Positions 8,983 to 50,867 are shown, counted from the first letter of the stretch. The stretch: 64,000 nt of DNA from Phyllobates terribilis (GCF_046119375.1 NW_027362763.1:903650001-903714000), one strand, 5' to 3'. Notes: generated by a model not told the origin, from the letters alone. Numbers and translations: made by a program.

Positions 8983-11149
8983 ACAGTGGTTAGAAGAACC
9001 AACTCTAGTTTACATCCCATTGATTTTATGAAAATGGTAAAATACTTTATTTACTACAAAATTTCCGCTGTATGATCTAGCAGTGGGACACCCTTTGAAC
9101 AGTTTATTGGCAGGGAACCTTTTTAATAAAAAGTCATTTTTCAAAGTTTAGAAATCTTTTGAATAAAAATTTGCTTCTGCAAATTTCTTCTGTCTGTAAA
9201 TGACTTGTAGGAAAATAAGTGGATTAATTTAGATTTGCATTTGATACAAAGGCCTTATTGCTGGAAACAAGCATTATACACAATATTAACAACACATTAA
9301 ACTTTCCAAAGAAAAAGTGCACAATGTCTATATTCTATACTGATATTATCCATCTTCCATGTGCAACGGATTCTATTCTATTTTCATAAGAGATATATAA
9401 TTCAGCATGTATGTGTGCAAATATAACATATTTTATGCTAATTCATGCTCTCACAAAATCGGCTTTCAAGCTGATCCATACAGAATATTTAGTTCGCAAT
9501 TTCTGATATATATCAAATGTAAACCATAAAATACATTAGCAGACATTATAATATGGGTTCCTTACCAGGCTCTGTGCTATCGACGGTGATATTAGTCATG
9601 TTAGTAGTTATCATAGTGGATGGTGAAGCTGTTACGATAGCTGGGAAGAACACAATAAAATGTGAGCTCGAATAGTGACACTGGGACCCATTAATCAGGT
9701 AAAGCATTGGTTGTGACAATAAATTCAGTAATCTAGGCGGGTAAGGTTATTGTGCAATAAAGCAATAGGTGCCATTCAATAATTTACATACTATACATAT
9801 GCACAAGGATGTGAACCATTGTGGATAGCAATGATCATTAGGCTATGTTCACTCAAGGAAGATTTTTTTGCACCAGTTCTGCCACTGTTTGATACATCTG
9901 ATTGGAGCTTCCAAAAATCCATGCACATGCTGCAGAACCTCTCTATTCAGACATATGAAAGTGGTTTTCAGTTTCAGAAATTCTGCTGTTTGTGAACATA
10001 CCCATATTGATATTGCATATTGTAGCCAAGTAATTAATTGCTGTGATTCATTATTTTGCAAGCCAGGCTTATAAAAAGTAATTCTAAAAGAAGCTTGCAA
10101 ACCACATTGAAGAATTATAAACCTTTGTAACAAAGGAACACATATAGAAATTCGGGATATTCAACAAATTGCTAACATTTCTACATATAACGGTAGATAA
10201 TAGCATAATGTTTTCTCCAAAATACCTTGTATATGCAAGTTACATTTACTTTGATGTGGTTTCAATAGATTCTAATTGTTGCTTCTGCCACTGCTTTGAC
10301 TTTTTGGGGCAACCTCCTTATAGGGATTATCCACTGCTTAGTAACACATTATTAATGGGTGCAGAGAGGTGAAAAATAAATGCAATTTACCTCCCGGACC
10401 AGCGCTGGTCCTTGGTAGTTAGCGCTGTGTCCCGCCACCGGTCTGCTGGGATCAACATTCAGAGGGAAGCATCACATGACTGCTGCAGCCAATCAATGGA
10501 TGTTGATCCCATTGGACCATTGGAGAACACAGTGGTGACTTTGGAAGAGTAATACATATACAGGATATATCTTCAGCAAATTTTTGCCTTTTGCTCTTTT
10601 TCCAGATCAATTGACAAGAATATGGAAAAAAAATTCAGTTGCTACCTGAAGATCATTATTTAACCCGAAACCAATTACTGTTCTTGAATATTATGACTGA
10701 TATGTATTTTACATAGTACAGTGACAAATATCTAAGGACGTGTGAAACTCAGCAATATTACAATTACTAAATATTTATTAATATGTATATTACACGAATA
10801 CATCAATAACATATGTGGTTGATAAAAAAATTAGAAAACAGAAGGAAAAAAGTCTACCTGAGAATAAATGACAGTGAAGGTGATAAATAATACAATGCTG
10901 CTTTAATGCCAGCACAGATAATAAACCTATGTAAGTAATAGATCCAACTTGGGATATAACCTTAGGGGATCACAAACAATAAAAACATGACAACGTAAAA
11001 GTAGTGAACAACCTCTTTGAGTGTGGTTAGAAGAACCAACTCTCGTTAACATCCCATTGATTTTATAAAAATGGTAAAATACTTTATTTCCTACAAAATT
11101 TCCGCTGTATGATCTAGCAGGGGGACACCCTTTGAACAGTTTATTGGCA
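8954..11149 (+). repeat. 159-bp direct repeat pair (8954-9112 and 10991-11149)
   Basis: Both copies read CAACGTAAAAGTAGTG...TTTATTGGCA at roughly 90% identity by eye. Confidence 0.85.
9566..9640 (-). CDS. Same gene, 75-bp Ser/Thr-rich exon (mini-exon c)
   Basis: Acceptor ttcttcccag| and donor |gtaagg. Encodes (A)IVTASPSTMITTNMTNITVDSTEP, a clear paralog of mini-exon b (shared ITTN motif and N-glycosylation sequons). Confidence 0.75.
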
Positions 11150-19665: not shown

Positions 19666-19827
19666 NNNNNNNNNNNNNNNNNNNNNNNNNNNNNNNNNNN
19701 NNNNNNNNNNNNNNNNNNNNNNNNNNNNNNNNNNNNNNNNNNNNNNNNNNNNNNNNNNNNNNNNNNNNNNNNNNNNNNNNNNNNNNNNNNNNNNNNNNNN
19801 NNNNNNNNNNNNNNNNNNNNNNNNNNN
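19666..19827. other. Assembly gap (162 N) flanked by TA-rich microsatellite
   Basis: Run of N between tatac and gtatatac. Confidence 0.99.
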
Positions 19828-21190: not shown

Positions 21191-22336
21191 TGACGCGCCC
21201 CCTGGGCCATGTTGTTAGGGATACCCGGAGCCGGATCAGATGGGGGTTGTAGTCTCCGAGTGGCTGTGACCCGGTCCGTGCCCAGGGTGTCAAACTCAGT
21301 GTGCGGCAGTCCTTGCAGATGTTATTAGTGTCGACTACGCCACCCGTTGATTTGCGGTCAAAAGGCCGCCGCTGCAGGATGGTCCGCTGAGGCTGGTGGT
21401 GTGTGTGCAGCTGTGGTAGTATAACCCCCAACGGGAGGGGTATAGCCTCAGGGGGTCAGACGTGGAGGATGGTGGTTGTGAAGGTGCAGCAAGGAGACTC
21501 AGAGGCATGAAATGCAGTTCAGGGTTTTTACTCACTGGTGTTGCTCGGGTCACTCTGTACAGCAGTGACCACCCAAGCCGTGCTGCGTCCACCAGGTGCG
21601 GGACTCGGTCAACTCCCGGGCAATTCCTGAGTATGGTCCTGAGCTCCCTTCTTCTCTCTCTCTCTGGCCGTTCCCACCAGGGATCCACCTGTGTCCGGCT
21701 CCCTCGGGTCTCTTGGTGGTTGAACCTTCTCTGGCTTCCCTGACCCTATGCTCGGTGTGCCATTCTGGTGGATTTGGTGAGGGTCGTGGCAAATCTTGCC
21801 CACGGCCTCCGGTTCCTGGCTAAGGTTTGCTTTGGCCTCCGCCAGCTTGGGATCCGGTACCCTTTTGCCGACCCTTCACCCTTATCAGTTCTCATACGGG
21901 CTCTTGGGGTCCCCTCTCGTCCTGCGCCTCTGGGTCCCTCTTCCTTCTCCTCTCCTGGAGTTACTGCTGACTCACAGACTGACTGACTGACTGACCCTGT
22001 CCTAAGATGGTGCCCACCTTATATACTCCCTCTATGTGTGAGCTCAGGTGACCAGCACCCAATGAGCTCCTACATTTACCCAGACTACTCCCCCTATCTG
22101 CCCCTACACTACTGGGATGTTCCACCCCCCTCCCACTCCAGCCAGGGACAGACGCTGTCGTACCTGCACATATACTGGTGGGAGTACCGTTGTTCTGTCC
22201 CCCAGAAATGGGATGTATGTAGTGCATGCAGCCTACTAGCTCAGTTCCATACTCCATCCTTACCCGGGAGTGGAATACCACACCTCTGGGTTGAGGTGCA
22301 ATACCCCTGTAGCAGCCGAATCCTCAGGGTGCTACA
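21191..22336 (-). repeat. 3' LTR of element A
   Basis: Direct repeat of 24693-25838 with about 5 substitutions seen by eye; preceded on the minus strand by the PPT CCAGGGGGGAA. Confidence 0.92.
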
Positions 22337-22780
22337 TTCCCCCCTGGTAAATCACAGCACGTCCTCGGGCTGTAAAAGAATAAAAACATCCAAAAACATA
22401 CGATTTTTTTTCATAACATAAACATATAAAACATATAAACATTATCAGCAGCATAAACTTTTCATATAAACCTTCTTGTTCCTCCGGCCACGGTGCAACT
22501 TGTGACCGGGTAAAGTGCAACAGTCTCTTCTGGAAAAACACAGTTCCTTACAAAACCAGTAGGGGGCGCCTTAGAAAGCGCAACTATGTACAAAAGGGGA
22601 ATATGGCCGCTCTCAGTCCTCGGCCAGTGGGGAAAAAGAATGGCTGTTCACAGTCCTCAGCCTGTTAGGGGATAGGGACACACGGGTATTCACTTGCTGG
22701 TCCCGACGGGGACTACACTTTGGTAGCAGCAGTTTTTGTACCCACACGGGTAACTATTTACATATTCTATTTACAGTTCA

Positions 22781-24712
22781 TCAGTGGCGGTATGCTCTTG
22801 GCTGAGGGTAATCTTTAGACCCGTCCGGGTCCTCTTGATCCTCCTCACCCCGTAGCTCCTCCTCAGTCAGTCTATGCACATGCAGGGCATACGGGCCCTT
22901 GGCGCACTGATGCCGGGTGAAGGTGACCTCATCACCCAGGTATAGGTCACGACCTCTGTGTCCCTCCGGTAGGTGGGACTCGACATCACTTCTGGTCACG
23001 AAGACGTCGCCGGGGGTGTGATGGTCTCTGATGAAGCCCCAACCGTGCTGCAACTGGAATTTAATTACAGTCCCGGTGGCACGGGGACCGTGGGCTGCAC
23101 GGGGGTTCCTTCGGGTCCGGCTCTTTTGTTCTGCACTCTTTACTTGCAGCCGCTCCTCGCAGACCCGCCTCTCTTTCCTCTCTCTGTCGAAGACCTCTAA
23201 CTGCTGCCGGCAGCACTCCGCACGCTCAGCTGCGGCCGCCCGGGTCTCCTCGGTGAATCCCATTAGGTCCTCACCGGTAAAGTCCCACTCGAACTGGGCT
23301 TCCTCCAACGAGAGTGGGGTGATCTTGGCGGGCGCCGGAGCCGGGATCAGGGGCTCATCCATGGGTCTTTCTTTCCGGAGTCGGGGATGGTGGTACTCCG
23401 GTGGCCACACAGGGGGCTGCCCATCCGGGCAGGTGTCTTCACCCAGGTGTGGCGCTGTGGACGTTGAGGGCGCGGTGGTGGTAACGGCGCCCGGGCTCAC
23501 CAGGCCTTGCGACCAGGCCTGGGGCACCCTGAAGGTGAAGGGCACCGTGAAGACGGCGGCGCCCGGGGTTACTCGGCCCAGCGACCAGGCCGGTGGCATG
23601 ATGGTGGTAGAGGGCGCAGTGAAGACGGCGGCGCCCGGGGGTACTCGGCCCTGCGACCAGGCCGGTGGCGCTTCCTGCTTGGCCGCGCTCAGGGTTGAGG
23701 CGCGTGACGTTACAGGGGGCGTGGCCGCAGCTCCGGCCGCTTGAGGCCTAGCTTGGAGCGATGACGCAGCGGCTACGGGAACGGTGAGTGGGGCTTCGGG
23801 CTCTGCGACGGGGAGCTGGGGCAGGTTTACGGCTTCTGGGCACGGCATGTTGTCGTCCCCATTACCTGCCTTCATCTCTTCGGCTCCCTCCGCGGCGTCG
23901 TCTCCGGCCGTCGTCCATCCTTCGCCGTCCTCAGAGGTGGACCTGCTCCTCGCTGCGGGTGGCATGCTTCACTGGCGGGCTCCGGCCTGCCGGGCCATCT
24001 CTCGGGTCCACTCCGCCAGTGTTTCCTGCTGCACCCGGGCCATCCTTCGTGCTAGGCCCTCCAGCGCGGTCTGTGCACGCTCCCGATCTCCGGGGAGCTG
24101 CGCCAGGATCTCCAGCAGGCCTTCTGGAGTGGCGGCCTGCAACAGGCTCCTGACCACTGGGTCAGTGCTGCCTGACTCTCCCTCCATCTCCGGGTGTGTT
24201 CTCTCTAGACTCTTCCAAGCTGCTCCCATCTTCACTCTTTTGTTCTGTATCCGCCCACATTGGGGGTCGTCCTGGGGCAACTTTGTGATTGCCAGTTCCA
24301 GGGGCAGTTCCCTCACGCTGATGGACATATCAATCATCACAGTCTCTGCTGGTGGGGGCGGTTTCCACTTTTGGCGCCATTTTCGGTCCTGGCCCACGAT
24401 GTGAGGTGGCCTCTTGCCATCCTTTGGCACGCCCATAATGGCGTCCGCTCTGCAAAGGCGGGAAATCTTCTCTGATGGCGGGAATCGCTTCCCAGTGGCG
24501 GGAAACACTGCAGATGGCGGGAAAAGACTGCAGATGACGGGCAAATGGCGGGAACTGATCCGAGATGGCGTCCGATGGCGGGGACCCTCTGGAACCGGCG
24601 GGAGACTTCTTTTTGAGGTAAATGCGAACTTTTCTTCAGGCACGCAGTACCCGGTGGTTGCGGGCACGTGATCCTGCCGACTACGCCAAAGTTGACGCGC
24701 CCCCTGGGCCAT
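22781..24712 (-). pseudogene. Element A ORF: Pro/Ala-rich and coiled-coil protein with C-terminal cold-shock domain, split by one in-frame TGA
   Basis: ORFs 23969..24712 and 22781..23965 are in the same frame, separated by TGA at 23969-23971, and colinear with the 701-aa ORF of element B. The cold-shock domain GTVIKFQLQHGWGFIRD...GDVFVT...LYLGDEVTF...KGPYALHV lies at 22868-23074. Confidence 0.85.
24671..24688 (-). promoter_or_regulatory. Primer-binding site (tRNA-Ser) of element A
   Basis: Minus strand TGGCGTAGTCGGCAGGAT, complementary to the 3' end of vertebrate tRNA-Ser(AGA/TGA) (...ATCCTGCCGACTACG-CCA), located 4 nt after the LTR. Confidence 0.88.
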
Positions 24713-25838
24713 GTTGTTAGGGATACCCGGAGCCGGATCAGATGGGGGTTGTAGTCTCCGAGTGGCTGTGACCCGGTCCGTGCCCAGGGTGTCAAACTCA
24801 GTGTGCGGCAGTCCTTGCAGATGTTCTTAGTGTCGACTACGCCACCCGTTGATTTGCGGTCAAAAGGCCGCCGCTGCAGGATGGTCCGCTGAGGCTGGTG
24901 GTGTGTGTGCAGCTGTGGTAGTATAACCCCCAACGGGAGGGGTATAGCCTCAGGGGGTCAGACGTGGAGGATGGTGGTTGTGAAGGTGCAGCAAGGAGAC
25001 TCAGAGGCATGAAATGCAGTTCAGGGTTTTTACTCACTGGTGTTGCTCGGGTCACTCTGTACAGCAGTGACCACCCAAGCCGTGCTGCGTCCACCAGGTG
25101 CGGGACTCGGTCAACTCCCGGGCAATTCCTGAGTATGGTCCTGAGCTCCCTTCTTCTCTCTCTCTCTGGCCGTTCCCACCAGGGATCCACCTGTGTCCGG
25201 CTCCCTCGGGTCTCTTGGTGGTTGAACCTTCTCTGGCTTCCCTGACCCTATGCTCGGTGTGCCATTCTGGTGGATTTGGTGAGGGTCGTGGCAAATCTTG
25301 CCCACGACCTCCGGGTCCTGGCTAAGGTTTGCTTTGGCCTCCGCCAGCTTGGGATCCGGTACCCTTTTGCCGACCCTTCACCCTTATCAGTTCTCATACG
25401 GGCTCTTGGGGTCCCCTCTCGTCCTGCGCCTCTGGGTCCCTCTTCCTTCTCCTCTCCTGGAGTTACTGCTGACTCACAGACTGACTGACTGACTGACCCT
25501 GTCCTAAGATGGTGCCCACCTTATATACTCCCTCTATGTGTGAGCTCAGGTGACCAGCACCCAATGAGCTCCTACATTTACCCAGACTACTCCCCCTATC
25601 TGCCCCTACACTACTGGGATGTTCCACCCCCCTCCCACTCCAGCCAGGGACAGACGCTGTCATACCTGCACATATACTGGTGGGAGTACCGTTGTTCTGT
25701 CCCCCGGAAATGGGATGTATGTAGTGCATGCAGCCTACTAGCTCAGTTCCATACTCCATCCTTACCCGGGAGTGGAATACCACACCTCTGGGTTGAGGTG
25801 CAATACCCCTGTAGCAGCCGAATCCTCAGGGTGCTACA
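24693..25838 (-). repeat. 5' LTR of element A
   Basis: TG...CA termini, TATATAA box and AGTAAA polyA-like signal on the minus strand; followed by ACTT and the PBS. Confidence 0.92.
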
Positions 25839-26836
25839 CTAACATCACAGAACACTTGGAGAACAATTTGCATACTGCGCAGAAGTTGTTAAAACTTGTT
25901 TTTTTTTATAGAGTTTTTATTACTGTTGCTATGCAAAGATGTGTTATGAAATGTCTTTTTAGCCCCAATAAAGCTGTTATAGCATACAGGGTCATGAAAA
26001 GTGATGACAGGTTCCTGTTAAGGAAAGATAAAAATGTTATAGTCACAAGCTCCGTCATATGAGTCACACAAAATAAAAATACCACGGATAGAACCTATTA
26101 GCTTCTTCTTTACCCTACAGCGTTTACTGAAACAATACATTCCCTGCACACAAAAAACAATTGAAACTGACAGCAAATGGGCAACATTCAAAAAGCTTTG
26201 GAAATATTTATCATACTCAGATATGACACAACCTAATTGGCTACAATTAGATTTAACGCTACATCCATGTTATTGAGTTGCTTCATCTACCTTGTCATTA
26301 TTTGGGACATGCATCTTGTGCAGCAGCTGCAGGATGGTGCAGGGGCTTATGTGAACCTTACTAGGGTTATGCCAAAACAGTTCCACCAATCACACACACA
26401 ACCAGGCTCAGACTGACCCACAGGGCACAAGTGAATACCCCGGTCGGTCTCTGTGTAGGAATAAACTCTCAGTCCCTCACCCCTCTACAAGAGCAGTGCT
26501 TGGCAAAGTACATTTAATGCAATATATAAAGAGGGAATGTAGAGCATGTAATCATTTATTTAATAAATTACCAAGTTTATTAAAATGTAGATGCATATAG
26601 TAAAGTGGCAGACCATGTTGTATCCACCCTCCCAGACGCCATTTACTTGATATTGCCACAGTGGTCCCTTCCTCCCTAATCATCTGGCAGCTTCTTGCTG
26701 TTGCCTAAAGTGACTGTCCAGTACTGATATTAATAGCCTATCCTGAGGAAAGTTCATCAATACAGATTGGCAGTGGGTGAGACACCCACAGTTCCGTCCA
26801 TATTCATCTAAAGCTAGTTACCCGAAAACTTCAAAT

Positions 26837-27917
26837 TTGTACGCTGATGACACCCAGATCTACCTCTCTGGCCCAGACGTCACCTCTCTGCTATCCAGAA
26901 TCCCAGCATGTCTAGCAGCCATATCCTCCTCCTTCTCCTCTCGCTTCCTCAAGCTCAATGTGGAAAAAACTGAACTCATCCTCTTTCCTCCATCTCACAT
27001 ATCTTCTCCACCTGATCTTTCTATCACAATAAATGACATCACACTTTCCCCTGTAACGGCAATCCGCTGCATCGGAGTAACCCTTGACTCTGCCCTGTCC
27101 TTCAAACCCCACATCCAAGCTCTCACCACCTCCTGTCGCCTCCAGCTTAAAAATATTTCCACAATTCATCCTTTCCTCAACCCTCACTCTACTAAACTGC
27201 TTGTGCATGCCCTCATCATCTCCCACCTCGACTACTGCAACATCCTCCTTTGTGGCCTACCTGCTAACACTCTCACACCCCTCCAGTCCATCCTTAACTC
27301 TGCTGCGCGACTGGTTCAAATCTAGCCTCGCTACTCCTCTGCTACTCCCCTTTGCAAATCTGTCCACTGGCTCCCAATTGCCCAGCGTAACCAGTTCAAA
27401 CTACTAACACTGACCTACAAAGTCATCCATAACCTCTCTCCTCCGTACATCTCTGAACTAATCTCTCGATACATTCCCTTACATAATCTCCGGTCCTCCC
27501 AAGACCTCCTTCTCTCCTCCACACTTATTCATTCCTCACCCAATCGCTTCCAAGATTTCTCCCGAACATCCCCCATCCTATGGAATTCTGTGCCTCAACA
27601 AGTCTGATTATGTGCTACATTTGAATCCTTCAGACGGAACCTGAAAACCCATCTCTTCAAACAAGCTTACAGCCTGCCATGACCTTGCTTGCTGCCACCT
27701 AAACAACACCGGAACTACTGCAACCCCTCAACCTACTGTCTCCTTCTCTGTTCCTGTAGATTGTAAGCCCGCAAGGGCAGGGCCCTCTTCCCCCTGTATC
27801 AGTCAATCATTGATAGTTTGTTTACTGTAAGAGATATTTGTAATTGGTATGTAACCCTTTCTTATGTACAGAACCATGGAATCAATGGCGCTATATAAAT
27901 AAATAATAATAATAATA
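26837..27917 (+). mobile_element. 5'-truncated L2/CR1-clade LINE (RT C-terminus and 3' tail)
   Basis: LYADDTQIYL...FLKLNVEKTELILFP...ISHLDYCN RT motifs, in-frame TAG at 27323-27325, 3' end GGCGCTATATAAATAAA(TAA)n. Confidence 0.88.
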
Positions 27918-29528: not shown

Positions 29529-30134
29529 TTTATAAGCCTTAGTAGGGCATGTGGGCAGGTGATATTATTTTGGGACAAACCTTTATAAAAAAAAAAAACC
29601 AGATGCCCGGCCTTGGGAATAATAAATTAAATTAAAAAATAATTACTAAAATTCTAAAACAGTCACATATTTAGAAAGATTAACAGGTGTCAAGTCAGAA
29701 ATGTGAAAAATGTTATTTGGCTTTTTCAAAACACAGTAACATAGCATAAGACAAGCAAAATACATCTACAATCACTACACTTTGCATTATAAACATTATG
29801 TATGCCAACCTATGGTAATGCACAATCTGGCTTTGCTCCCAGTAAATGTATGCTTCACAAGGGATAGTTTAATGGAAGTGACTGAATAGACTGAATTAAC
29901 AGGTCTATTCATTTTCAGACAACTTATTTCAGTTTTAGATGTTGCTCATGCTAAGGCTATGTTCACACATCATATTTTTTTTTGCGTCACAAATCTGCAG
30001 CAAAACCTGATCACTCCAGGGAGGTTTGCTGCAGATTTTTCTGCCAGTTTTAGTGCTTTTTTTATGCATTTTGGTGCATTTTTTCAGCGTTTTTTTCACT
30101 GTTCTTCTTGTCCTTCTGTCTCCTTTTATGCATG

Positions 30135-31339
30135 TGTAGCACCCTGAGGATTCGGCTGCTACAGGGGTATTGCACCTCAACCCAGAGGTGTGATATTCCA
30201 CTCCCGGGTAAGGAAGGAGTGTGGAACTGAGCTCAGATAGACTGCATGCACTACATACATCCCATTCCAGAGGAGCAGGCCGACGGTACTCCCACTTAGA
30301 AATGTGCAGGTACAACCGAGCCTGTTCCTGGCTGGAGTGGGAGGGGGGTGGTACATCCCATGTAGTGTAGGGGCAGATAGGGGGAGCAGTCTGGGTAGTG
30401 ATAGGAGCTCATTGGGTGCTGGTCACCTGAGCTCACACATAGAGGGATATATAAGGAGGGCACCAACTTAGATCAGGGTCAGACGCTGAGAACAAGTCAG
30501 TTGGAGAGGAGAGAGAAGGAAACAGCAGCCCTGGAGAGAGAGAGAGTGGAGCAGAGAAAGACCCAGAGGGGGAAGACTGAAGGGACCCAAGAACCCAAAT
30601 TAGAGCACCGGGTGAGGAGTCAGCAAGAGGGTACCGGAACCCAAGCTGGTGGGGGCAAAGACATTCCCCAGCCAGAGACCGGAGACCGTGGGCAGTGTCT
30701 GTCACGGTCACCCACCACATTCACCCCGAAGGCACACCACATGAAGGGTCAGGGAACCCAGGGCCAAGGGTGTCCCAAAAGAAGGCCCGAGGGAGCTGGA
30801 CCTAGGTGAATCACTGGTGGGGACGGCTGAAGAAAGGACAGAGGGAGAGCTCAGGGCCACGCTCTGGACTTGTTTGGGGGTTGGCCGGATCCAGGACCTG
30901 GTGGACGCAGCACGGCTCGGGTGGTCACTAGCAGCTGGAGTGACCAGTACAACATCAGCAGTAAGTAAACACCCTTAACTGCACAACCCGAGTCTGTCTT
31001 CATTGCCGGCTGCATCGCACCACCACAACCCCCATCCTCTGCGCCTGTCCCCTCTGAGGCTATACCCCTCCCGTTGGGGGTTATCTCACCAAGCTGCGCA
31101 CCCACCATCAGCCTCAGCGGACCCTGCAGCAGCGGCGGCCACAGTGACCGCATCACAACGGGTGGCGTAGTCGACACAAAAGAACTTTAGTAACATCTGT
31201 AAAGCTGCCACATCACACTGAGCTTGACGCCCTGGGCACGGGACCGGGTCACAGCCGCTCGGAGACTACAACCCCCCATCTGATCCGGTGCCGGGTATTC
31301 CCCTCAAAAAAAAAGGAATATGTCCCAGGGGGCGCGTCA
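30135..31339 (+). repeat. 5' LTR of element B
   Basis: TG...CA termini, TATA-like GATATATAAGG near 30445 and AGTAAA near 30964. Appears identical to the 3' LTR (the ORF-track translations of both copies are identical). Confidence 0.93.
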
Positions 31340-33425
31340 ACTTTGGCGTAGTCGGCAGGATTACGTGCCCGCAACACCCGGGTACTGCGTGCCTGAAGAA
31401 AAGTGCAAGTTTACCTCAGAAAGAAGTCTCCCGCCGGTTCCGGAGGGTCCACGCCATCGGACTCCATCACCAGTCATTTCCCGCCGATTGTCCGCCATTT
31501 CCAGCTTGTTCCCGCCATCTGCAGAGTTTCCCGCCACTGGGCGACGCTTCCCGCCAAAACCGCAGATTTCCCGCCTTGGAAGAGCAGCGGACGCCATTAT
31601 GGGCGTGCCAAAGGAGGGCAAGAGGCCACCTCCCATCGTGGGCCAGGACAGAAAATGGCGCCAAAAGTGGAAACCGCCCCCACCAACAGAGACTGTGATG
31701 CTGGAGGTGTCTGTCAGCGTGAAAGAACTCCCCCTGGAGCTGACAGTCACCGAGTTGCCCCGGGACCGCCCTCGAAGTGGGAGGAGACGAAAGAGAAGAG
31801 AAAAGATGGGTGTCGCTTGGAGCAGTCTGGAGCGAGCGCACCCGGAGGCAAGAGGTCTAACAAGGAGTAGCGGAGAAGCTCACCCGGAGATGGAAAGCAA
31901 GCAGGACAGCACCGGCCCGCTGGCCAGGAGTCTGCTAGAGACCGAGGAAGGAGGGCAGAGCAGCACCGGCCCGCTGGCCAGGAGCCTGCCGGAAGCCGAG
32001 CAGAGCAGCACCGACCCGATGGTCAGGAGCCTGCTAGAGTCCACAACCCCGCTAGGTCTAGCGGAGATCCTAGCGCAGCTCCCCCGAGACCGGGAGTGTG
32101 CACAAACTGCCCTGGAGGGCCTCGCAAGGAGGATGGCCCGGGTACAGCGCGAGATACTGGCGGAGTGGGGCCGGGAGAGGACCCAGCAAGCAAAGACCAG
32201 TCAACGGAGCACGCTACCCTGGAAGAGGAAGCAGACCGCCTCTGAGGATGGCGCAGGAGGACCCAAGGCCGGAGACGGCGCCGAGGAGGGAGCCGAACGC
32301 ATGGAGGCAGGTAAAGGGGACGCCTATACCCCAAGCCGTGACACCGCTTACCTGCCCCAGCTCCCCGTCGCAGAGCCCGAAAGTCCCCCTGCTGTGCCCG
32401 TAGCCGCCAGGTCACCGCCATGGACTAGGCCCCGACCGGAAGCCGCCGCAGCGACCCCTGTGACGTCACGCGCCCCGACCCGGGGCGTGACCAAGCAGGA
32501 AGTACCACCAGCCTGGTCGCAAGGCCTAGTACCCCCGGGCGCCGCAATACCAACAGCGCCCCCTACCTCCGCGGAGCCTCCGGCCTGGCCGCAAGGCCAG
32601 GTAGCCCAGGGCGCCGCCGTCCTAACGGTGCCCTTCACCTTCCAGGTGCCCCAGGCCTGGCCGCAAGGCCTGGGCAACCCGGGCGCCACCACCACCGCGC
32701 CCGCGCCCGCAATACCTAGGGTGCCACACCTGGGGGAGGACCTCTTCGGCCAGCTCACATGGCCGGACGGGCGGCCCTTCATCTGGCCCGAAGGGTACCC
32801 TGAGCTGGAGCGGCAGCAAAGACTAGGGCCCTTGTGTGAGCCCCTAATCCCGGCTCCGAAGCCCGTGGCTCGGGTCTCGCCTCCTCTAGCAGAAGCCCAA
32901 TTCGTGTGGGACCCCACGGGAGAAGATTTGATGGGGTTCACCGGAGAAACTCGGGCAGCCGCAGCTGAACGTACAGAGTGTTGCCGTCAACAGCTGGCAG
33001 AGTTTAAGAGAGAACGGGAGGAGAGGCGGGTCAGAGAACAACAGGCCCAAATCCAGAGCGCGGAGCAGAAGAGCCGGACTAGGAGGAACCCCCGTGCAGC
33101 GCATTGTCCCCGCACCATCGGGACAGTGATAAAGTTCAACCCGCAGCATGGGTGGGGCTTTATTCGGGACCGTAACAACCGCGGTGACGTTTTTGTGACC
33201 CGCAGAGACGTCGAGTCCCACCTGCCGGAAGGTCACAAAGGCCGTGACCTCTACGTCGGAGACGAGGTCACTTTCACCCGGCACAAGTGTGCCAAAGGAC
33301 CTTACGCCCTCCACGTACACCGCTTGACGGAGGAGGAGTTGCGGTACGGGGAGGAGGAGTCAGAGGACCCGGACGGGTCTGAAGAAACATCATATCAAGA
33401 AAGAGCAGGAGGAAGACGCCGTTGA
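31320..33425 (+). CDS. Element B ORF (701 aa, or 608 aa from the internal ATG at 31599): basic N-terminal region, helical segments, three 24-aa Pro/Ala repeats, coiled coil, C-terminal cold-shock domain and acidic tail
   Basis: Uninterrupted ORF. Residues GTVIKFNPQHGWGFIRDRNNRGDVFVTRRDV...LYVGDEVTF...KGPYALHV (33120-33326) align with the cold-shock consensus GTVKWFN..KGFGFI...DVFVH...L.EG..VEF....KGP.A.NV. Confidence 0.9.
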   Translation: MSQGARQLWRSRQDYVPATPGYCVPEEKCKFTSERSLPPVPEGPRHRTPSPVISRRLSAISSLFPPSAEFPATGRRFPPKPQISRLGRAADAIMGVPKEGKRPPPIVGQDRKWRQKWKPPPPTETVMLEVSVSVKELPLELTVTELPRDRPRSGRRRKRREKMGVAWSSLERAHPEARGLTRSSGEAHPEMESKQDSTGPLARSLLETEEGGQSSTGPLARSLPEAEQSSTDPMVRSLLESTTPLGLAEILAQLPRDRECAQTALEGLARRMARVQREILAEWGRERTQQAKTSQRSTLPWKRKQTASEDGAGGPKAGDGAEEGAERMEAGKGDAYTPSRDTAYLPQLPVAEPESPPAVPVAARSPPWTRPRPEAAAATPVTSRAPTRGVTKQEVPPAWSQGLVPPGAAIPTAPPTSAEPPAWPQGQVAQGAAVLTVPFTFQVPQAWPQGLGNPGATTTAPAPAIPRVPHLGEDLFGQLTWPDGRPFIWPEGYPELERQQRLGPLCEPLIPAPKPVARVSPPLAEAQFVWDPTGEDLMGFTGETRAAAAERTECCRQQLAEFKREREERRVREQQAQIQSAEQKSRTRRNPRAAHCPRTIGTVIKFNPQHGWGFIRDRNNRGDVFVTRRDVESHLPEGHKGRDLYVGDEVTFTRHKCAKGPYALHVHRLTEEELRYGEEESEDPDGSEETSYQERAGGRRR
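31344..31362 (+). promoter_or_regulatory. Primer-binding site (tRNA-Ser) of element B
   Basis: TGGCGTAGTCGGCAGGATT is a 19-nt complement of the tRNA-Ser 3' end, with an ACTT spacer after the LTR CA. Confidence 0.9.
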
Positions 33426-33893
33426 GTGCGGCAGAGCAGGAGCTGTAAATAGTTACCCAATCGGGGTATATAGAAACTGAAACTGTTGCTGCTAAAATAG
33501 TCCCCGTTGGGACCAGGGAACTGTTTACCCGTTAACCCCTTCATCCTACAGGCTGAGGACTGTGAGCAGCCATTCCCTACCCTCTACCTGGCCGAGGACT
33601 GAGAGCGGCCAACTTTCAACTTCCCCTGTATATAGTTGCGCTTCCTAAAGCGCCCCCTACCGGTTTTATAGAAAACCAGTTTTTCTAAGAGACTGTCGCA
33701 CTTTTCCCGGACACACGTTGCACAGTGTCCGGAGGAGGAACCAGAGACAAGAGAAGTCTACGAGAATGTTTATATAAAAAGTTTTATATATATATAATGT
33801 TTATATGTTTTATATGTTCATATAAAAATTTTGTATGTTTTGGTGTTTTATGTCTTACAGCCCGAGGACGTGCTGTGATTTACCAGGGGGGAA

Positions 33894-35098
33894 TGTAGCA
33901 CCCTGAGGATTCGGCTGCTACAGGGGTATTGCACCTCAACCCAGAGGTGTGATATTCCACTCCCGGGTAAGGAAGGAGTGTGGAACTGAGCTCAGATAGA
34001 CTGCATGCACTACATACATCCCATTCCAGAGGAGCAGGCCGACGGTACTCCCACTTAGAAATGTGCAGGTACAACCGAGCCTGTTCCTGGCTGGAGTGGG
34101 AGGGGGGTGGTACATCCCATGTAGTGTAGGGGCAGATAGGGGGAGCAGTCTGGGTAGTGATAGGAGCTCATTGGGTGCTGGTCACCTGAGCTCACACATA
34201 GAGGGATATATAAGGAGGGCACCAACTTAGATCAGGGTCAGACGCTGAGAACAAGTCAGTTGGAGAGGAGAGAGAAGGAAACAGCAGCCCTGGAGAGAGA
34301 GAGAGTGGAGCAGAGAAAGACCCAGAGGGGGAAGACTGAAGGGACCCAAGAACCCAAATTAGAGCACCGGGTGAGGAGTCAGCAAGAGGGTACCGGAACC
34401 CAAGCTGGTGGGGGCAAAGACATTCCCCAGCCAGAGACCGGAGACCGTGGGCAGTGTCTGTCACGGTCACCCACCACATTCACCCCGAAGGCACACCACA
34501 TGAAGGGTCAGGGAACCCAGGGCCAAGGGTGTCCCAAAAGAAGGCCCGAGGGAGCTGGACCTAGGTGAATCACTGGTGGGGACGGCTGAAGAAAGGACAG
34601 AGGGAGAGCTCAGGGCCACGCTCTGGACTTGTTTGGGGGTTGGCCGGATCCAGGACCTGGTGGACGCAGCACGGCTCGGGTGGTCACTAGCAGCTGGAGT
34701 GACCAGTACAACATCAGCAGTAAGTAAACACCCTTAACTGCACAACCCGAGTCTGTCTTCATTGCCGGCTGCATCGCACCACCACAACCCCCATCCTCTG
34801 CGCCTGTCCCCTCTGAGGCTATACCCCTCCCGTTGGGGGTTATCTCACCAAGCTGCGCACCCACCATCAGCCTCAGCGGACCCTGCAGCAGCGGCGGCCA
34901 CAGTGACCGCATCACAACGGGTGGCGTAGTCGACACAAAAGAACTTTAGTAACATCTGTAAAGCTGCCACATCACACTGAGCTTGACGCCCTGGGCACGG
35001 GACCGGGTCACAGCCGCTCGGAGACTACAACCCCCCATCTGATCCGGTGCCGGGTATTCCCCTCAAAAAAAAAGGAATATGTCCCAGGGGGCGCGTCA
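33894..35098 (+). repeat. 3' LTR of element B
   Basis: Immediately follows the PPT, ends GCGCGTCA and is followed by TSD CATG. Confidence 0.93.
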
Positions 35099-36867
35099 CA
35101 TGTACATAAAGTTTCCCAAAAAGAACCCCATTCTATTTGGCATCAAAAACGCTGAAACAAATTTTGATGCATTTTTGGTGCGTTTTTTAAGCGTTTTTTT
35201 TCACCATCCATTACTTCCTATGGGTGAAAAAACACAGAAAAAATGTTAAAAGAAGTGACATGCTCTATTTTCCAAAAACAATGCAAGGCACAAAATCCTG
35301 AACAAAAAAAAACCATGATGTGTGAACTAAGAATTCTGAAATCTGGTACTGCAAAAGGCAGCAGAAAATTTGCATAAAAAAAGGCATTAAAAAACGTTGA
35401 AAAACCATGACGTGTGAATATAGCCTAATGGTCTTTGCACAGTGTTCTCTGAAGGGACAAGAGTCTGTTCTTTGAATCTCTATATAGTACGTATTCCTAT
35501 CAGATATATTATTTTTTATTCACTTTCTGGAGTTTGTAGGGTTAGGAAACCTATGAGTTATATACAGCCACGAATGCCAAATCAATTGATGGGTTACAAC
35601 TCCTAGACAAAGAGTCAACATTTATATAGTAATTTCAAACCACCTGATCTCATTATATAAAGAGCTAAGTAGGCAAGCTGCTAAAATATGTACTCTTACC
35701 CATTCAAAGTGCCAACCACTACTTCTCCCTTGTGTCTAACCTGGTGCTTACTGCCTGTTGTTAAGTGTAATCTATCAAGCAGTGAAGATACCAAAACAGA
35801 TTACAGAAAGTAGGGATGGGTCATTGTCTATCTGCTTCTTCTTTCCTTTCTGTCAAACTGCATACAGTTGTAACAGGGATGCTGGCTATTAGTTTGAGCC
35901 TTTCAAACTACTAATCAAACCTTGTGTAATGCATGATAGAAAGTTAAGGAAAGAAAATTTCAGCACCTATAGTGCTAGAGGACAGGGATGAAAACTAGTA
36001 TGTGCTCCAAAAGTAATTTTAAATTATTGTTGATGAGGGCAGCATGCTACAAGTGTTATGTGAAAAGGCAGGTATGTGTAATATCTAGTGATGAGAGAGC
36101 ATGCTCGTTACTCCAGATTTACGAGCATGCTCGGGTGTTTTCCAAGTATCTTCAGCGTGCTCGGGTATTATGTTTTAGTCACTCTGCGCTCATGATTTGC
36201 GACTGTTTGACAGCTTTAATACATGTGAGGAATGCCTGTTTCTTAGGCATTTCTCACATGTATTAAAGCTGTCAAACAGTCGCAAATCATGAGCACGGAG
36301 TGACTGAAACATAACACCCAAGCACGCTGAAGATACTCGGCGAGCACCCGAACATGCTCGCTGAAAGGGTTAATAGAACATACTCGCTCATCACTAGTTA
36401 AAACTTCTGCAGAAGAGGAAAAGCCATTAAACCCCCTCAAGTGGTAGGGCCTGGTTGTGACCACAGCTCCTGTTGCCCCTATTTGTACACCTCTGCCTGG
36501 ATCAGGAACTGGACTGAAGAAATAAAGATGCTAAACTATATGTTTGTTGTAAGTTTTATGTTCTGTACACTTTAGGAAATGACTTTGTAAACACATTAAA
36601 CAGCTGCAGGAGAATACCCACTGAACCTAACAAGCACCCATATTACAGCATGGCGTCACTCCACTTTAATGGAACAGAGAAATTGGTGAAAAAACAAGAA
36701 TAATCTTACACATTAATAGCTTCCTTGTCTCTCATTGCAATTTTAACATTCCAACATATGTTGTCAATAAGAAACACATGAGTTATTTGTTCTTACAGAT
36801 GAACAATAGTCTAAATGATACCAGAGGGAGAAAAATGACAGAAGAACATTTGTGAAACCATACTCAC

Positions 36868-37488
36868 CACAACTAAGGTTGCTTTCTGCTTTTCTTGCCC
36901 ATGGTGGGATGTTCCATAAGTCGTTTTCCCAATTTATAACATTTCCCTTTATTTCACAGCTGAGGTTTGCAAGAGTACGTGAATCCATTGCAAAGTCCCA
37001 AAGACGGAAGTTGTAAATATCCCCTTGTAGTGGCTCTATTCCAGAACTGCAGGAGCCCAGTGTTAAATTCCCATTACCTGGAATGGAAAGGTCTTTCGCG
37101 TCTGGACAGGAAACGGCTTTGTAGCTATTTTTTGTGCTCACAAATACATGATCTGAACTACTATTCCAGATAACACACAGCTGTTGAAATGATTCTGTAA
37201 AGAAGTCTGTACTGCCATCTAAAAGCAGGGCAGGATCAAGAATGCATGGAACATCCAAGACAGTCAACACATGTCCATAAGCTTCTTTTCCAAAGCTTAA
37301 ACGGTCTTTGTTTGAGGTTTGGTAAGAAAAAGCCTTCCAGTTCTCTTTGCTATTGTTCGTTTTGGTAGCCTCAAAGCAAATAGTTAATTGTTTTAAAAGG
37401 GGAACAGATACTTTCGATGACAAAGAGACAAGACCTGAACTTTGGTTTTGTGGAATAGTGACTTTTTGGTTTTGCAACGACACAGCGA
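36868..37488 (-). CDS. Same adhesion GPCR, pentraxin/LamG-like (PTX) exon (621 bp, phase 1-1)
   Basis: Acceptor ttttttcatag| and donor |gtgagt. Translates as VAVSLQNQKV...LTICFEATK...WKAFSY...QQLCVIWN...GDIYNFRLWDF...KGNVINWENDLWNIP...KAESNLSCG, matching the ADGRG6 PTX exon (VAVSLRNQKV...GDIYNFRLWNF...KAESNLSCG). Confidence 0.93.
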
Positions 37489-39803
37489 CTATGAAAAAAA
37501 AAAGAAAATAGAAATTAATTCCAAAATCATGAAGCAAATTAACATTACATTTTCAGGAATAATCTATCAATTGGTGGTGAAGCAATATGAATAAATCCTT
37601 ATATTAATTAACAAACAACTTATATGTTCACCATAGAATATTCTTTTAATTGATATACTTATAGAGAAGGTATTGCTACTTCTTTAAAGGGGTTGTACTA
37701 TTAGGACAATTATAGCTCATATGTCCCATTTGTCCAAATGAACATCATAGTGATGGTCCTTTGCTCCGGCTAACCATCTATTAATAAAAGTGAGGAGCTG
37801 CTGTAAAAGAGGACTATGGAATAAAACATTTCTCCAGCAGTGACTGATGTAGATGAAATGTGCTTCTGGAGAGATAACAGTTGATTGCGGGGGATTTCAG
37901 ACTTTGAACCTCTAAGGTCCAAGCAAATTTTACTCTTAAGAACCACACATAATTGTTTTCTACATCAAGATTGTTACAATACAATGGTGTGCAGACTAAG
38001 AGCTCATGCAAGATATATTATTTTAGTGGATTGTCTTCCGTATATTACAATATTATAAAATTATTACATCAAGCTCTCGGCAGATCTTAAAGAGGTTGTC
38101 TCAAGCTCTTAATTGGTTAAAATGTCAAATAACTTGTAAAAACAAGCAACTTTGCAATCTACTTCATAGTAAAAATCGTTTCCACTCTCGACAGAGGGAT
38201 TTTTAATTTTATAGATTACTGCACGTTGACTAGGTTATTTGCCGCCCTGTAGTGGCCAGTTACCTAAGTAAGGAGCATGCAGCACTTATATGATCTATGT
38301 TAAAGAGCATGCATGTGCTGCTCTAAATCAGGCTGGTGAGAGCGTGGGACGGTGCTCAAGTTGACAAAAGCAGTTCAGCTATCTGCTGGTCTGATCTGTC
38401 AATCTTCACGAGTGCACTGCTCCCTGCAACCAGGAAGTCAGGAATTTGGGGAGCAGTGCGCTCATGAAGAAGAAGATTGGAACACTCCTTTAAAGGGGTT
38501 GTCCAGAAAAAATAATCTTTGTCCATGGGATGAAATATGTAAAAAATAACAAACTTAGCCATAATCACCTACCAGCATCTATCTGGATACATAGCAGGCC
38601 TCTCCATAGTCTGCACAGAGTGGGTGACGATTGGTGAGTATGGCCGAACTGACCTTTTTTTATCTTGCTCAGACAACCCGTTTAACTGCTGTGACGTGTG
38701 ACATTTACAACATAGGTTGTTAAGGAAAGTATGAAGCTGGCTCAGGAGCTGAACCTTTTTCATACCAAGCAGATGCCAGCTGTGTTTCATAGCTGGCATC
38801 TGCCTTTAACAGCAGCGACCATAATCTGCTGTGATCACTGCAGCTTAACCACTTATTAATTATTATGCCACTATTAATCTATGATGACGCGATTATGGTG
38901 AACCATATGAGGACTGGTGAAGGTACTGAAACTACCATCTAGGCCCTCCTAAGCTATCAAACTATTGCAAGCACAAGTCAATGACAAGACAAAAAAATAC
39001 AGTAAAAGTAAAAAAAAAGTTATAAAAAATAAAAAAAGTTAAACAACCCTGTTATTTCCCAATCAAAAGTAAAGAAATAAAAATAAATAAACATGTGTGG
39101 TATCATGATATAAAAAAGTCCAGTCTATTAAAATTTAAAATGGTTTAAATCAGATGTTAAACAAAAAAGAAAATAAAACGGAAGCGCTAGAATTTTCGTT
39201 CACTGCACTTTGCAAAAAAAATGCAAATAATAACATTCAAACTGTCAGATGTATCCCATAATTGTATCACTAAAAACATCAGCTCAGGGCCCCCAAAAAA
39301 GCCCCGACACATGGATAGATTTTTATTTTTCAACAAATTTCATAATTTTTTTCACAACTAATATGTAAAAAAAAATGGGACCAGTTTGGTATTGCTGTAA
39401 TCATACTAATCTGAAGAATCAGGTTGCCAGTTTATTTTTTCTATATAATGAATGTTGTAGAAACAAAACCCAATAAAAACAACTACTACTTTTTTTTTCA
39501 CAATTTCACTGCACTTGGATTTTTTTTTCCCGCTTTCCATTACATCCTATGGTAAAATGAATGCCAATATTCAAAACTGCAACTTGTCCTGCAAGAAAAA
39601 GCCTTCATATGGCTATGTCGATGGAAAAATATAAAACCGTTTTGGCTCTTGGAAAAAGGGGGAGAAAAAAAACAAAGGTGCTAAAAAGAAAAATTCCTGA
39701 GTCCTTAACGGCTTAACTTATATGTTGCCTTTTAGCAAACTTTTTCTTCAGTAATCTCAGGTAAGGTAAAGTAAATTCACAAACTGAATCCATTCATACT
39801 TAC

Positions 39804-45734: not shown

Positions 45735-47238
45735 CCGTATTTTTCAGACCATAAGACGCACTTTTTTCCTCCAAAATTTTGGAGGAAAATTGGGGGTGCG
45801 TCTTATGGTCCGAATGTTGGGGGGGGGTATATATTTATGTGTGGTGTGGGGGGGAGCGGTAGCGGTGGAGGAGCGGGGCACAGGAGGCAGCAGCCGCCTG
45901 CTGCAGCCTTCACTGTCCCCGCTGCTAAAGAAAATGAATATTCACTGCTCCCCACACCCATGGGGCGTGGGGAGCACTGAATATTCATGCTCCTTAATAG
46001 CGGTATACAGTGTAGCCACGCTGAGGCTGCTGCTGCTGCCGGCTATCTCCTGTGCCCGCTGTTAAAGGGCATGAATATTCAACCTCTCTCCACACCCATG
46101 GGTGTGGGGAGGGGGTGAATATTCATGCCCTTTAATGAGCGGGCACAGGAGATAGCCGGCAGTAGCAGCAGCCGCAGCGCAGCTCCGCTGTGTGCCGGCT
46201 ATGAAGGAGAGTGAAGTCACTGCTCCCCGCACACACATACCCAGCGTGGGGAGCAGTGACTTCCGGCAGGTGAGCTCTCCTTGTGAGCCACGCATGGCAG
46301 TGACGTCATGCGTGGCTCACATGGAGAGAACAGTGCAGGCAGACCGAACGCAGCGCTGGAGGAGAGAAGAAAGGTGAGTAGGAGTGTTTATTTTTTTTAA
46401 TGTGCAGCCTGATGGGGATTAGGAGTGCCATGCATACTAGGCAGGGATTAGGGGTGCCATGCATACCAGGACAGGGATGAGGGGTGCCATGCATACTAGG
46501 ACAGGGATTAGGGGTGCCATGCATACCAGGACAGGGATGAGGGGTGCCATGCATACTAGGACAGGGATTAGGGGTGCCATGCATACCAGGACAAGGATGA
46601 GGGGTGTCATGCATACCAGGACAGGGATTAGGGGTGCCAAGCATACCAGGACAGGGATGAGGGGTGCCATACATACCAGGACAGGGATGAGGGGTGCCAT
46701 GCATACCAGGACAGGGATGAGGGGTGTCATGCATACCAGGACAGGGATGAGGGGTGCCATGCATACCAGGACAGGGATGAGGGGTGTCATGCATACCAGG
46801 ACAGGGATGAGGGGTGCCATGCATACCAGGACAGGGATGAGGGGTGCCATGCATACCAGGATAGGGATGATGGGTGCCATGCATACCAGGACAGGGATTA
46901 GGGGTGCCATGCATACCAGGACAGGGATAAGGGGTGCCATGCATATCAGGATAGGTATGAGGGGTGCCATGCATACCAGGATGGAGGGATGCCAGGCATA
47001 CCAGGATGAGGATGGGGACCACATATAAAAGAAAGGAGGGCGGCATATATACCAGGATGGGGGATATTGTCAGAATTGGGGGACATTACCCCTATACCAG
47101 TGTCAGCAGAAGACCCCCTCCCCCTTAAAAGTGCATCATGACCACATTTTTTGCTTCAATTTTTATTTTTTTATTTTCCTCCTCTAAAACCTAGGTGCGT
47201 CTTATGGTCCGGTGCGTCTTATAGTCCGAAAAATACGG
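45735..47238. mobile_element. Non-autonomous Tc1/mariner-superfamily (pogo-like) element, 1,504 bp
   Basis: TIRs CCGTATTTTTC(A/G)GAC(C/T)ATAAGACGCAC with TA TSD; no transposase; internal hairpins and a minisatellite. Confidence 0.75.
46420..46995. repeat. 30-bp minisatellite, about 19 copies
   Basis: Unit GCATACCAGGACAGGGAT(G/T)AGGGGTGCCAT repeated in tandem. Confidence 0.92.
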
Positions 47239-49842: not shown

Positions 49843-50867
49843 TGTGGCACCCCAGGTCTGGTTGCCACAAATGTGATTAATCTTCGTCTGAGAGCAGGAG
49901 GGAGGTTCCCTGGTTAGGGACAATTAGCATGCAGCACCTCCTGTCCCAGGCCAGTAGGGGGAGCTGGCTGCCCTATAAAAGCTGGAACTGGGGCAGGGTT
50001 AGAGAGACCAGAACCCACTTCTGAAGTGACCAGAAGGGTTTCTTAGAGGAAGGGACAGGTCAGCAGCAGCTGAGGAGTCCGGGAGGCAGAGGAGAGACTG
50101 CAAGCCAGGGACAGAGGCGACGAGAGCCGGTCCTGGCAGAGAATCAATATAACCGGACATTGGGGTCCGAGGCTGTCCGGGTTATCATTCCCAGCAGCAA
50201 AGAACCAATCCGCGAGGGATTTCAGGTCCCTTGGCCTAAGAAGCCTGGAGGCTCCGCCACACAGAGGGACCAGTACCGCGAGGAGGAAGCAAAAGGTACC
50301 CAAGGCCCGAGTCGCAAGCCATACAGGCGAGAAATACACGGCCAGCTCAGGGACGTGGGCTATTACACCACGAAGAGGGGGATAGTCAGAAAGAGCATAG
50401 AGAGAACGGTAGGCCTACATACTCACCCTGACCAGTGGGGCTTCCCCGAATGCTCTCAGACACCCAGGCCCATTCCTAACCGGTACTACTGTTGGGTCAT
50501 TAATAACATCTACAATAAAGACCCAGAAATGTTTTGAAACGGGCTCTGAACTTTTACTATTGTGGCAGGCACTATCACCCCCAGCATCCACCTACACTGC
50601 CCTGAGGCCACACTCCTCCCGTGGGGAGTTATCCTACCCTAGAGCTGCACACCAACACCAGCCTCAGAGGTCTGCCTAGCAGCGGCGGTTATCCCTGACC
50701 GCAATCCATGGGTGGCGTAGTCGGACATTCACAAATCTATAAATAGGCTGCCACAACATTGGTCTGACCACCCTGAGCCACCGGACCGGGTTGCCACTAC
50801 TACCCCAATCAGCACCGTACACCAGAAGACCCGGTTTCGAGTACCCCACGGCCCAGGGGGTGAGTCA
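49843..50867 (+). mobile_element. Solo LTR (1,025 bp) of a related family
   Basis: TGTGGCACCCC...GGGGGTGAGTCA, TSD ATAC, TATAAAA and AATAAA present; U5 similar to the other LTRs. Confidence 0.88.

Follow-up and report, generated by a model that had tools for sequence, protein, structure and literature searches.

Non-autonomous long terminal repeat (LTR) retrotransposons without pol are known from both mammals and plants, the former including MaLR/THE1/ORR1, ETn and VL30, and the latter LARD/TRIM and BARE-2. The interiors of LARD/TRIM elements are non-coding, ETn and VL30 are without a conserved protein, and BARE-2 has a recognisable Gag. Such elements keep their LTRs, primer site and polypurine tract, encode neither reverse transcriptase (RT) nor integrase, persist as stable lineages and amplify via a related autonomous element. 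The present study concerns a comparable element from the poison frog Phyllobates terribilis, termed element A, at positions 30135–35098 (+) of a 64,000-nucleotide stretch of DNA (GCF_046119375.1 NW_027362763.1:903650001-903714000; hereafter the window), together with a second member of its family, element B, which has the same architecture (21191–25838, −; 4,648 bp). Both share the properties listed above, and the same route of amplification is proposed for them, but they are unlike LARD/TRIM in that the interior contains an open reading frame (ORF) that appears to be under purifying selection and of which the only recognisable domain is a cold-shock domain (CSD). The reading favoured here, with moderate confidence, is that A and B represent a recently active, non-autonomous LTR lineage of dendrobatoid frogs that keeps its own predicted nucleic-acid-binding protein and would have RT and integrase supplied in trans.

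Structure and classification of elements A and B

Element A is a structurally complete LTR element, all parts of which lie on the plus strand. Its 5′ LTR (30135–31339) and 3′ LTR (33894–35098), each of 1,205 bp with TG at the start and CA at the end, are identical at 1205/1205 bases, and sequence comparison identified the target duplication CATG on the left (30131–30134) and right (35099–35102) flanks. The insertion is recent. The 5′ LTR contains TATATAA at 30448–30454 (LTR position 314) and AGTAAA at 30964–30969, both of which are kept in element B. The interior measures 2,554 bp, with a primer binding site, TGGCGTAGTCGGCAGGATT (31344–31362), starting four bases past the 5′ LTR, and a polypurine tract, ACCAGGGGGGAA (33882–33893), which adjoins the 3′ LTR and is identical in element B. 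The 19 nt of the primer site are perfectly complementary to the 3′ end of tRNA-Ser-AGA/TGA (its final 19 nt, with CCA), as taken from the mammalian sequence printed in PMC10359600; the frog tRNA is assumed to be the same. No tRNA genes or Rfam families were found in the 64-kb window. All of the features by which LTR retrotransposons are recognised structurally (TG..CA repeats, target duplication, primer site and polypurine tract) are thus present, and the first-pass annotation of this DNA, made from the sequence alone, had described each of them correctly.

The coding content is a different matter. No capsid, CCHC zinc knuckle, protease, RT or integrase was detected in elements A and B with Pfam, or in element A by comparison with PDB and BFVD, so that both the Gag and Pol expected of an autonomous LTR element or endogenous retrovirus, and the capsid and CCHC motif expected of a Gag, are lacking. 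Element A is therefore non-autonomous, as its structural parts are complete whilst its coding parts are not. The annotation had likewise seen no gag or pol motif in the ORF, and the CSD is indeed all that the Pfam, PDB and BFVD comparisons detect. Remote gag similarity in the N-terminal part of the ORF, which had been raised as an alternative, was not found in the N-terminal 540 aa by Pfam, PDB, BFVD or hhalign: these residues gave no PDB sequence match at E ≤ 10, and hhalign against a bona fide PNMA-type Ty3/gypsy Gag returned a probability of 0.1%.

Element B, on the minus strand, has LTRs of 1,146 bp (24693–25838 and 21191–22336) with five differing sites (1141/1146 identical, a difference of 0.44%), the target duplication TTAG, an 18-nt tRNA-Ser complement as its primer site and the polypurine tract already given. 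A and B share 74–79% identity at the DNA level (~25% diverged) and 70% at the protein level. The ORF of element B (24712 to 22781, −) is open throughout except for one TGA (23971–23969), where element A has CGG, and its CSD is recognised by Pfam at 23077–22874 (−). As the LTRs of element B differ by only 0.44%, this TGA was plausibly acquired by mutation after insertion. Because two subfamilies ~25% diverged share the layout without gag and pol, and each has a young copy, A and B represent a stable lineage and are not internal deletions that arose sporadically from an autonomous element. Such an origin had been named as an alternative in the first-pass annotation, and is contradicted both by the shared layout and by the strong purifying selection estimated for the CSD.

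Three related solo LTRs are also found in the window: C1 (TGTGGCACC...GAGTCA; 49843–50867, +; target duplication ATAC), C2, which is 86% identical to C1 (61550–62567, −; CATT), and C3, the U5 part of which is 84% identical to the element B LTR (1310–2313, −; TTCA). Together with A and B this makes five insertions of the LTR superfamily within 64 kb, each with its own 4-bp target duplication. Identity between A and B reaches 87–97% at the 5′ tip of the LTR, in the stretch before the TATA box, over the final 300 nt of U5, in the primer site and leader, and in the polypurine tract, as against 60–80% elsewhere. The LTR tips of the A/B family read TGT[AG]GCACC ... CCCAGGGGGCGCGTCA, and C1, C2 and C3 share the terminal sequences TGT[AG/GG/GT]CACC ... 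CCCAGGGG[G]NGNGTCA and part of U5. Such shared termini are the pattern that would be expected if all of these insertions depend on one integrase and RT system.

A further sequence resembling the primer site is present within U5. In the 5′ LTR of element A it reads TGGCGTAGTCGACA (31163–31176), and the general form, TGGCGTAGTCG(A/G)CA, lies ~165–180 nt before the LTR end and matches 11–12 nt of the tRNA-Ser 3′ end. It is found in A (31163–31176 and 34922–34935), B (21329–21342 and 24831–24844), C3 (1470–1483) and, in degenerate form, C1 (50713–50726); the motif has 8 matches where 0.28 are expected. Its origin may lie in an older boundary between LTR and primer site, or it may be a second contact for the tRNA.

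The first-pass annotation had called element A Ty3/Gypsy-like, but the superfamily to which A and B belong is suggested by few features, as their target duplications are 4 bp long and no pol is present on which an assignment could be based. A 4-bp target duplication fits ERV1 as well as Ty3/gypsy. A metagenome scan for an LTR end joined to a primer site returned six loci, which were considered as candidates for the autonomous partner and rejected, as they match A and B at the primer site only. Two of the six, L005 and L006, are genuine Ty3/gypsy loci in which an LTR ending in CA is followed, within a few bases, by the 18-nt tRNA-Ser primer site also present in A and B; this may be taken as a weak hint that A and B are also Ty3/gypsy. 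They differ from A and B in encoding a PNMA-like Gag with CCHC and a full RT-RNaseH-integrase Pol, and neither is the partner, because neither has LTR or leader similarity to A or B.

Two other retroelement remnants were observed. The metagenome contig L002 contains, at 7761–10746, a small element derived from gypsy, the 217-bp LTRs of which lie 2,769 bp apart; it keeps a piece of PNMA-like Gag and an integrase, without RT, and is an ordinary internal deletion, in contrast to A and B. In the window itself, a weak RT fragment (26777–27325, +; RVT_1, E 3.6e-4, below the Pfam cut-off) lies ~0.9 kb beyond element B, and is probably a decayed LINE and not part of that element.

The encoded protein and its relatives

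The sole long ORF of element A (31320–33425, +) has 701 codons counted from an ATG in U5. Pfam matched CSD (PF00313) at residues 601–667 with an E-value of 1.2e-8 and a score of 35.1 bits, and the ORF of element B scored 35.0 bits, against a cut-off of 27 bits. No other Pfam family matched the element A ORF at E 0.1 or better; a match to a Sas-6 oligomerisation domain at E 0.4 was set aside as generic charged-helix similarity. A sequence search of PDB matched the CSD to bacterial Csp proteins and to YB-1/YBX2. In the AlphaFold2 model of the full ORF, built on a family alignment of 7 sequences, 490/701 residues fall below a predicted local distance difference test (pLDDT) of 50, suggesting a mostly disordered chain. 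The ordered parts are predicted to be helices at residues 234–294 (pLDDT ~80 at residues 260–290, and lower before), a long helix rich in Arg, Glu and Lys at residues 542–589 (32943–33086, +), with 10-residue block means mostly between 81 and 92, and, directly after it, a five-stranded β-barrel at residues 598–668 (33111–33323, +), which is the CSD. When the C-terminal 172 aa were modelled alone, the barrel was obtained with a pLDDT of 80–92.

Foldseek searches with the CSD gave template modelling (TM) scores of up to 0.90, with E ~2e-7, to CspE, CspA and CspC, 0.62–0.83 to YB-1/YBX2 (YB-1 0.77–0.83) and 0.61–0.67 to CRHSP-24, and Lin28 was also matched. Only CSD folds were returned from PDB, and only phage CSDs from the viral models of BFVD. 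The motifs HGWGFI and DVFVT are both present in element A, and across the family G-[WY]-G-F-I (RNP1-like) and V-F-V are invariant or nearly so. By hidden Markov model, predicted fold and Foldseek comparison, the C-terminus therefore models as a true CSD, and this is further reflected in the codon-position differences given below. The first-pass annotation had assigned a CSD to the end of the ORF and had recognised that a failure to model as an oligonucleotide/oligosaccharide-binding (OB) fold would count against this; the Pfam score, the predicted five-stranded barrel and the TM scores all agree with the assignment.

The remainder of the chain offers fewer landmarks. The proline-rich middle contains a 72-nt (24-aa) tandem repeat (32511–32670, +) that carries P-[PQ]-A-W-[SP]-Q-G and is common to A, B and the Phyllobates homologue; this motif, in which small residues flank the Trp, might serve in protein interaction. 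Antisense ORFs overlie the same region in A (32348–32941, −) and B (23031–23744, +), as expected from its G+C-rich composition.

Selection was estimated between A and B from the Nei-Gojobori ratio of non-synonymous to synonymous differences per site (pN/pS), with a Fisher test. The ratio is lowest, at 0.14, for residues 541–672, which cover the charged helix and the CSD (p = 8e-31), followed by 0.30 for the conserved helical segment at residues 230–295 (32007–32204, +; p = 3e-6), 0.50 for residues 94–540 as a whole (p = 2e-11) and 0.59 for residues 1–93 (p = 0.11). Within the CSD, differences at the first, second and third codon positions are 0.125/0.069/0.514. This pattern indicates that the module of helix and CSD is under strong purifying selection, with constraint at the level of the protein. 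As the module has been conserved whilst the subfamilies diverged by ~25%, we infer that the element requires this protein in order to propagate itself. Third-position divergence is higher in the helix and CSD (0.50–0.51) than in the rest of the ORF (0.27–0.36) or the LTRs (~0.23), for which mosaic ancestry by recombination between subfamilies, or nucleotide constraint on the 5′ half, are possible explanations. Diversifying selection on synonymous sites, considered in view of a pS >0.75 in the CSD region, was rejected, since the Nei-Gojobori method inflates pS when transitions dominate.

A HMMER search of 1.84 billion representative proteins gave 29 matches, among which five are family members, all from Dendrobatoidea: one from P. 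terribilis (84–85% identity), one each from Ranitomeya variabilis and R. imitator, and two from Anomaloglossus baeobatrachus. The remaining matches are multi-CSD proteins of dinoflagellates and metagenomes, which align in the CSD part only, with 26–38% identity. The N-terminal 516 residues had no match outside the close relative P0001, and word-indexed protein searches with the whole ORF, the CSD region and a C-terminal profile returned only P0001 or P0004, and no transcriptome or Logan fragments. Of the five relatives, four (P0001, P0002, P0003 and P0006) are intronless gene models, and P0004 spans ~20 kb. No RT or integrase gene was present near the frog relatives within the 10 kb listed on each side.

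These matches bear on the origin of the ORF. Retroviruses and LTR elements do capture cellular sequences, and the interior could be a host CSD gene lately transduced, by retrocopy or read-through capture, and carried as a passive passenger. The loop between β3 and β4, which aligns without a gap to YB-1 and with a 5-residue gap to bacterial Csp, is indeed of eukaryotic Y-box length. However, no close host homologue was found, as the best matches outside the family share only 26–38% identity and YB-1 is reached only at E 3e-4 in PDB, and a passive passenger would decay, rather than be kept under purifying selection in two subfamilies ~25% apart. Recent capture of a host Y-box gene is unlikely on these grounds, because the matches outside the family are distant and confined to the CSD and the N-terminus is matchless beyond P0001; as an account of the whole interior, the passenger explanation is disfavoured and highly improbable.

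The protein might also be accessory or counter-defence cargo, acting in transcript protection or stabilisation, translation modulation or anti-silencing, or be moving towards domestication by the host. In frog oocytes, mRNAs are stored and stabilised by Y-box CSD proteins of the host. The strong protein-level constraint on the CSD would be in keeping with such a role, as would the long disordered region with its repeated Trp-containing P-x-A-W-x-Q-G motifs and the annotation of 4/5 relatives, in four species, as single-exon genes. Both copies in the window are, however, young and inside intact LTR elements with target duplications, so that selection would be acting on transposing lineages, and the N-terminal regions differ completely between distant relatives. 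We regard an accessory role of this kind as rather improbable.

Another explanation is that the ORF is the Gag of an autonomous family that has not been seen, in which a CSD replaces the CCHC nucleocapsid, and that A and B are a stable gag-only branch that lost pol. BARE-2 of barley is a comparable gag-only branch, and in Ty1 the Gag ORF begins within the LTR and runs across the primer site. The ORF here is likewise in the gag position, opening in U5 or in the leader directly after the primer site, and its predicted nucleic-acid-binding domain is C-terminal, like a nucleocapsid, with a conserved helical segment before it. Yet no capsid-like helical domain is predicted, since the first 540 residues contain ~60 aa of helix and the rest has a pLDDT below 50, although a novel fold could be missed by a model that rests on a 7-sequence alignment. 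Neither is there any Pfam, PDB or BFVD similarity to a Gag, or any similarity to the PNMA-type gypsy Gag, and no CSD fused to or beside an RT or integrase was present among the 1.84 billion representative proteins, from which genes of transposable elements are usually masked before annotation. We consider it unlikely that the ORF is such a Gag, and favour instead the reading of a non-autonomous lineage with a nucleic-acid-binding protein of its own.

Start site, leader and proposed mechanism

The first ATG of the ORF (31320) falls within the final 20 nt of the 5′ LTR, and codons 1–93 overlie the primer site and leader. Between A and B these codons show differences of 0.13/0.11/0.15 at the three positions and very low synonymous divergence, which suggests that the constraint on them acts on the nucleotides and not on the protein. 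From 30 nt past TATATAA to the U5 ATG, the sense strand contains only one ATG in A (9.7 expected) and three in B (8.9 expected), and none is present in any frame between the U5 ATG and Met94. In both elements the context of Met94 (31599), GCCATTATGG, is favourable for initiation, and in the three related solo LTRs the place of the U5 ATG is taken by ACG or CAG. The lack of a coding signature in codons 1–93, the ATG-poor leader and the solo LTRs without the U5 ATG make Met94 the likelier functional start, with a product of 608 aa, and an N-terminally extended isoform is possible. The 701-aa ORF given in the first-pass annotation is thus present and intact, but the size of the protein was overstated, in that codons 1–93 appear to be cis-acting leader. 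N-myristoylation at Met94-Gly was considered and rejected, as position 6 is Glu, against the consensus.

The leader contains six exact TCCCGCC motifs (31429–31575, +), with a spacing of 50/31/19/20/20 nt that is identical in A and B, whilst the spacers themselves have diverged. The two arrays account for 12/13 matches in the window, where 3.5 would be expected for its whole length. Since the motifs occupy all three codon phases, the array is a repeat at the nucleotide level and not of a peptide. It is at the usual place of a packaging signal, and the sole protein of the element is a predicted single-strand binder, which makes the array a natural candidate, as a hypothesis, for the binding site of the CSD protein.

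As A and B keep the cis parts but encode no capsid, protease, RT or integrase, these would have to come in trans. Transcription would start from the U3 promoter and produce a long, ATG-poor leader, after which the CSD protein would be translated. This protein would most likely serve as a single-stranded nucleic-acid binder and chaperone, coating or marking the genomic RNA of the element. The six UCCCGCC repeats that closely follow the primer site may be where it docks, and in this way it could help the element RNA to compete for the particles and RT of its partner. Reverse transcription primed by tRNA-Ser, and integration, would then be performed by the enzymes of an autonomous element able to recognise these LTR ends. 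Mobilisation in trans, RNA binding and the array as binding site are the parts of this scheme that we infer. A bolder version, which we put forward tentatively and think doubtful at present, is that the CSD protein arose independently and stands in for Gag, recognising the six-fold UCCCGCC leader array in order to load the RNA into the particles of another element or to form a ribonucleoprotein of its own.

Several observations weigh against the reading of a lineage mobilised in trans with its own RNA-binding protein, which the first-pass annotation had also proposed. No autonomous partner was found in the metagenome scan, among the six loci returned, and the selection figures rest on a single pair of copies, one of which, element B, has an in-frame TGA. 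Relative to bacterial Csp, the Trp before RNP1 is replaced (by K in A, and by K/A/D/S across the family), as is the RNP2 His (by Thr/Asn/Ala across the family). In the leader, TTTCCCGC also fits an E2F-type DNA site, so that the array may have its effect in transcription and not at the RNA level, and the leader RNA shows no unusual stability of folding (z = +0.59 for A and −0.34 for B).

If the lineage does mobilise in this way, it suggests that a parasitic element can better reach the machinery of its partner via a predicted nucleic-acid-binding protein of its own, and would offer a compact system, with one protein, one candidate six-repeat array and young copies, for studying how retroelement RNA is chosen for packaging. 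This would also be relevant to the question of why dendrobatid genomes (6–12 Gb) are so rich in young LTR elements. Were the protein a Gag substitute, the family would represent an LTR element with an ORF1p-like strategy of bringing its own RNA chaperone, combined with a cognate packaging array, and parasites of parasites may then add to the very large genomes of poison frogs.

Genomic setting and comparison with known systems

A and B appear to lie inside a large intron of an adhesion G-protein-coupled-receptor-like gene, A in antisense and B in sense orientation. A pentraxin-domain exon at 36764–37537 (−) has its best PDB match in adhesion G-protein-coupled receptor G6 (E 5e-28), with ADGRG4 and C-reactive protein as weaker matches, and a second host-gene exon downstream of it, at 4751–7450 (−), is a Ser/Thr-rich open frame of 899 codons with no Pfam match. 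Elsewhere in the window, a Tc1/mariner transposase frame at 54926–56125 (+) is open for 399 codons from a TTG (HTH_Tnp_Tc3_2, E 1e-22; DDE_3, E 6e-10). Directly downstream of it, 56471–59906 is densely filled with 67-nt-based direct repeats and long inverted repeats, arranged around GACCAATCAGC / TTTAAATTTGGCGCC motifs; the arms of the inverted repeats are up to 435 nt long and 93–98% complementary. A G+C-rich minisatellite at 46322–47101 has a 30-bp unit in ~26 copies, with a core identity of 93–96%, and yields spurious ORFs of 190–246 aa on both strands. A run of 162 N at 19666–19827 is an assembly gap or masked stretch.

The protein of A and B can be compared with three groups of described proteins. 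With the nucleocapsid of Gag it shares the position in the first ORF after the primer site, a C-terminal module preceded by basic residues and a presumed role in RNA chaperoning and packaging, but it is unlike nucleocapsid in having no CCHC motif and no capsid fold, and in using an unrelated OB-type β-barrel. In the Y-box and cold-shock proteins (YB-1, YBX2/FRGY2, LIN28 and CARHSP1/CRHSP-24) the fold, the loop length and G-[WY]-G-F-I are the same as in the CSD of A and B, whereas identity is only ~30%, neither the first stacking Trp nor the RNP2 His is conserved in A and B, and the flanks are unrelated; the gene of A and B also differs from Y-box genes in being intronless and inside a mobile element.

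The third comparison is with ORF1p of LINE-1, the role of which is described in PMC6428221 as the coating of its own RNA. ORF1p and, by prediction, the protein of A and B both combine a disordered N-terminus with a long helix and an RNA-binding domain, and the likeness is one of functional analogy. ORF1p differs in its RNA-recognition motif, C-terminal domain and trimeric coiled coil, and in belonging to a non-LTR element, whilst the protein of A and B has a CSD instead, a predicted helix rich in Arg, Glu and Lys, and an element with LTRs around it.

The literature searched gave nothing on CSDs in retrotransposon or other retroelement proteins, or on elements of this kind in poison frogs, in line with the first-pass annotation, which knew of no described vertebrate LTR family with such a cargo. 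Non-autonomous LTR elements are usually seen as non-coding or as carrying leftovers of gag, whereas A and B keep a protein of a different fold under what appears to be strong selection. They do not constitute a new category of element, but a known kind, the non-autonomous LTR element, with an unusual and evidently functional cargo.

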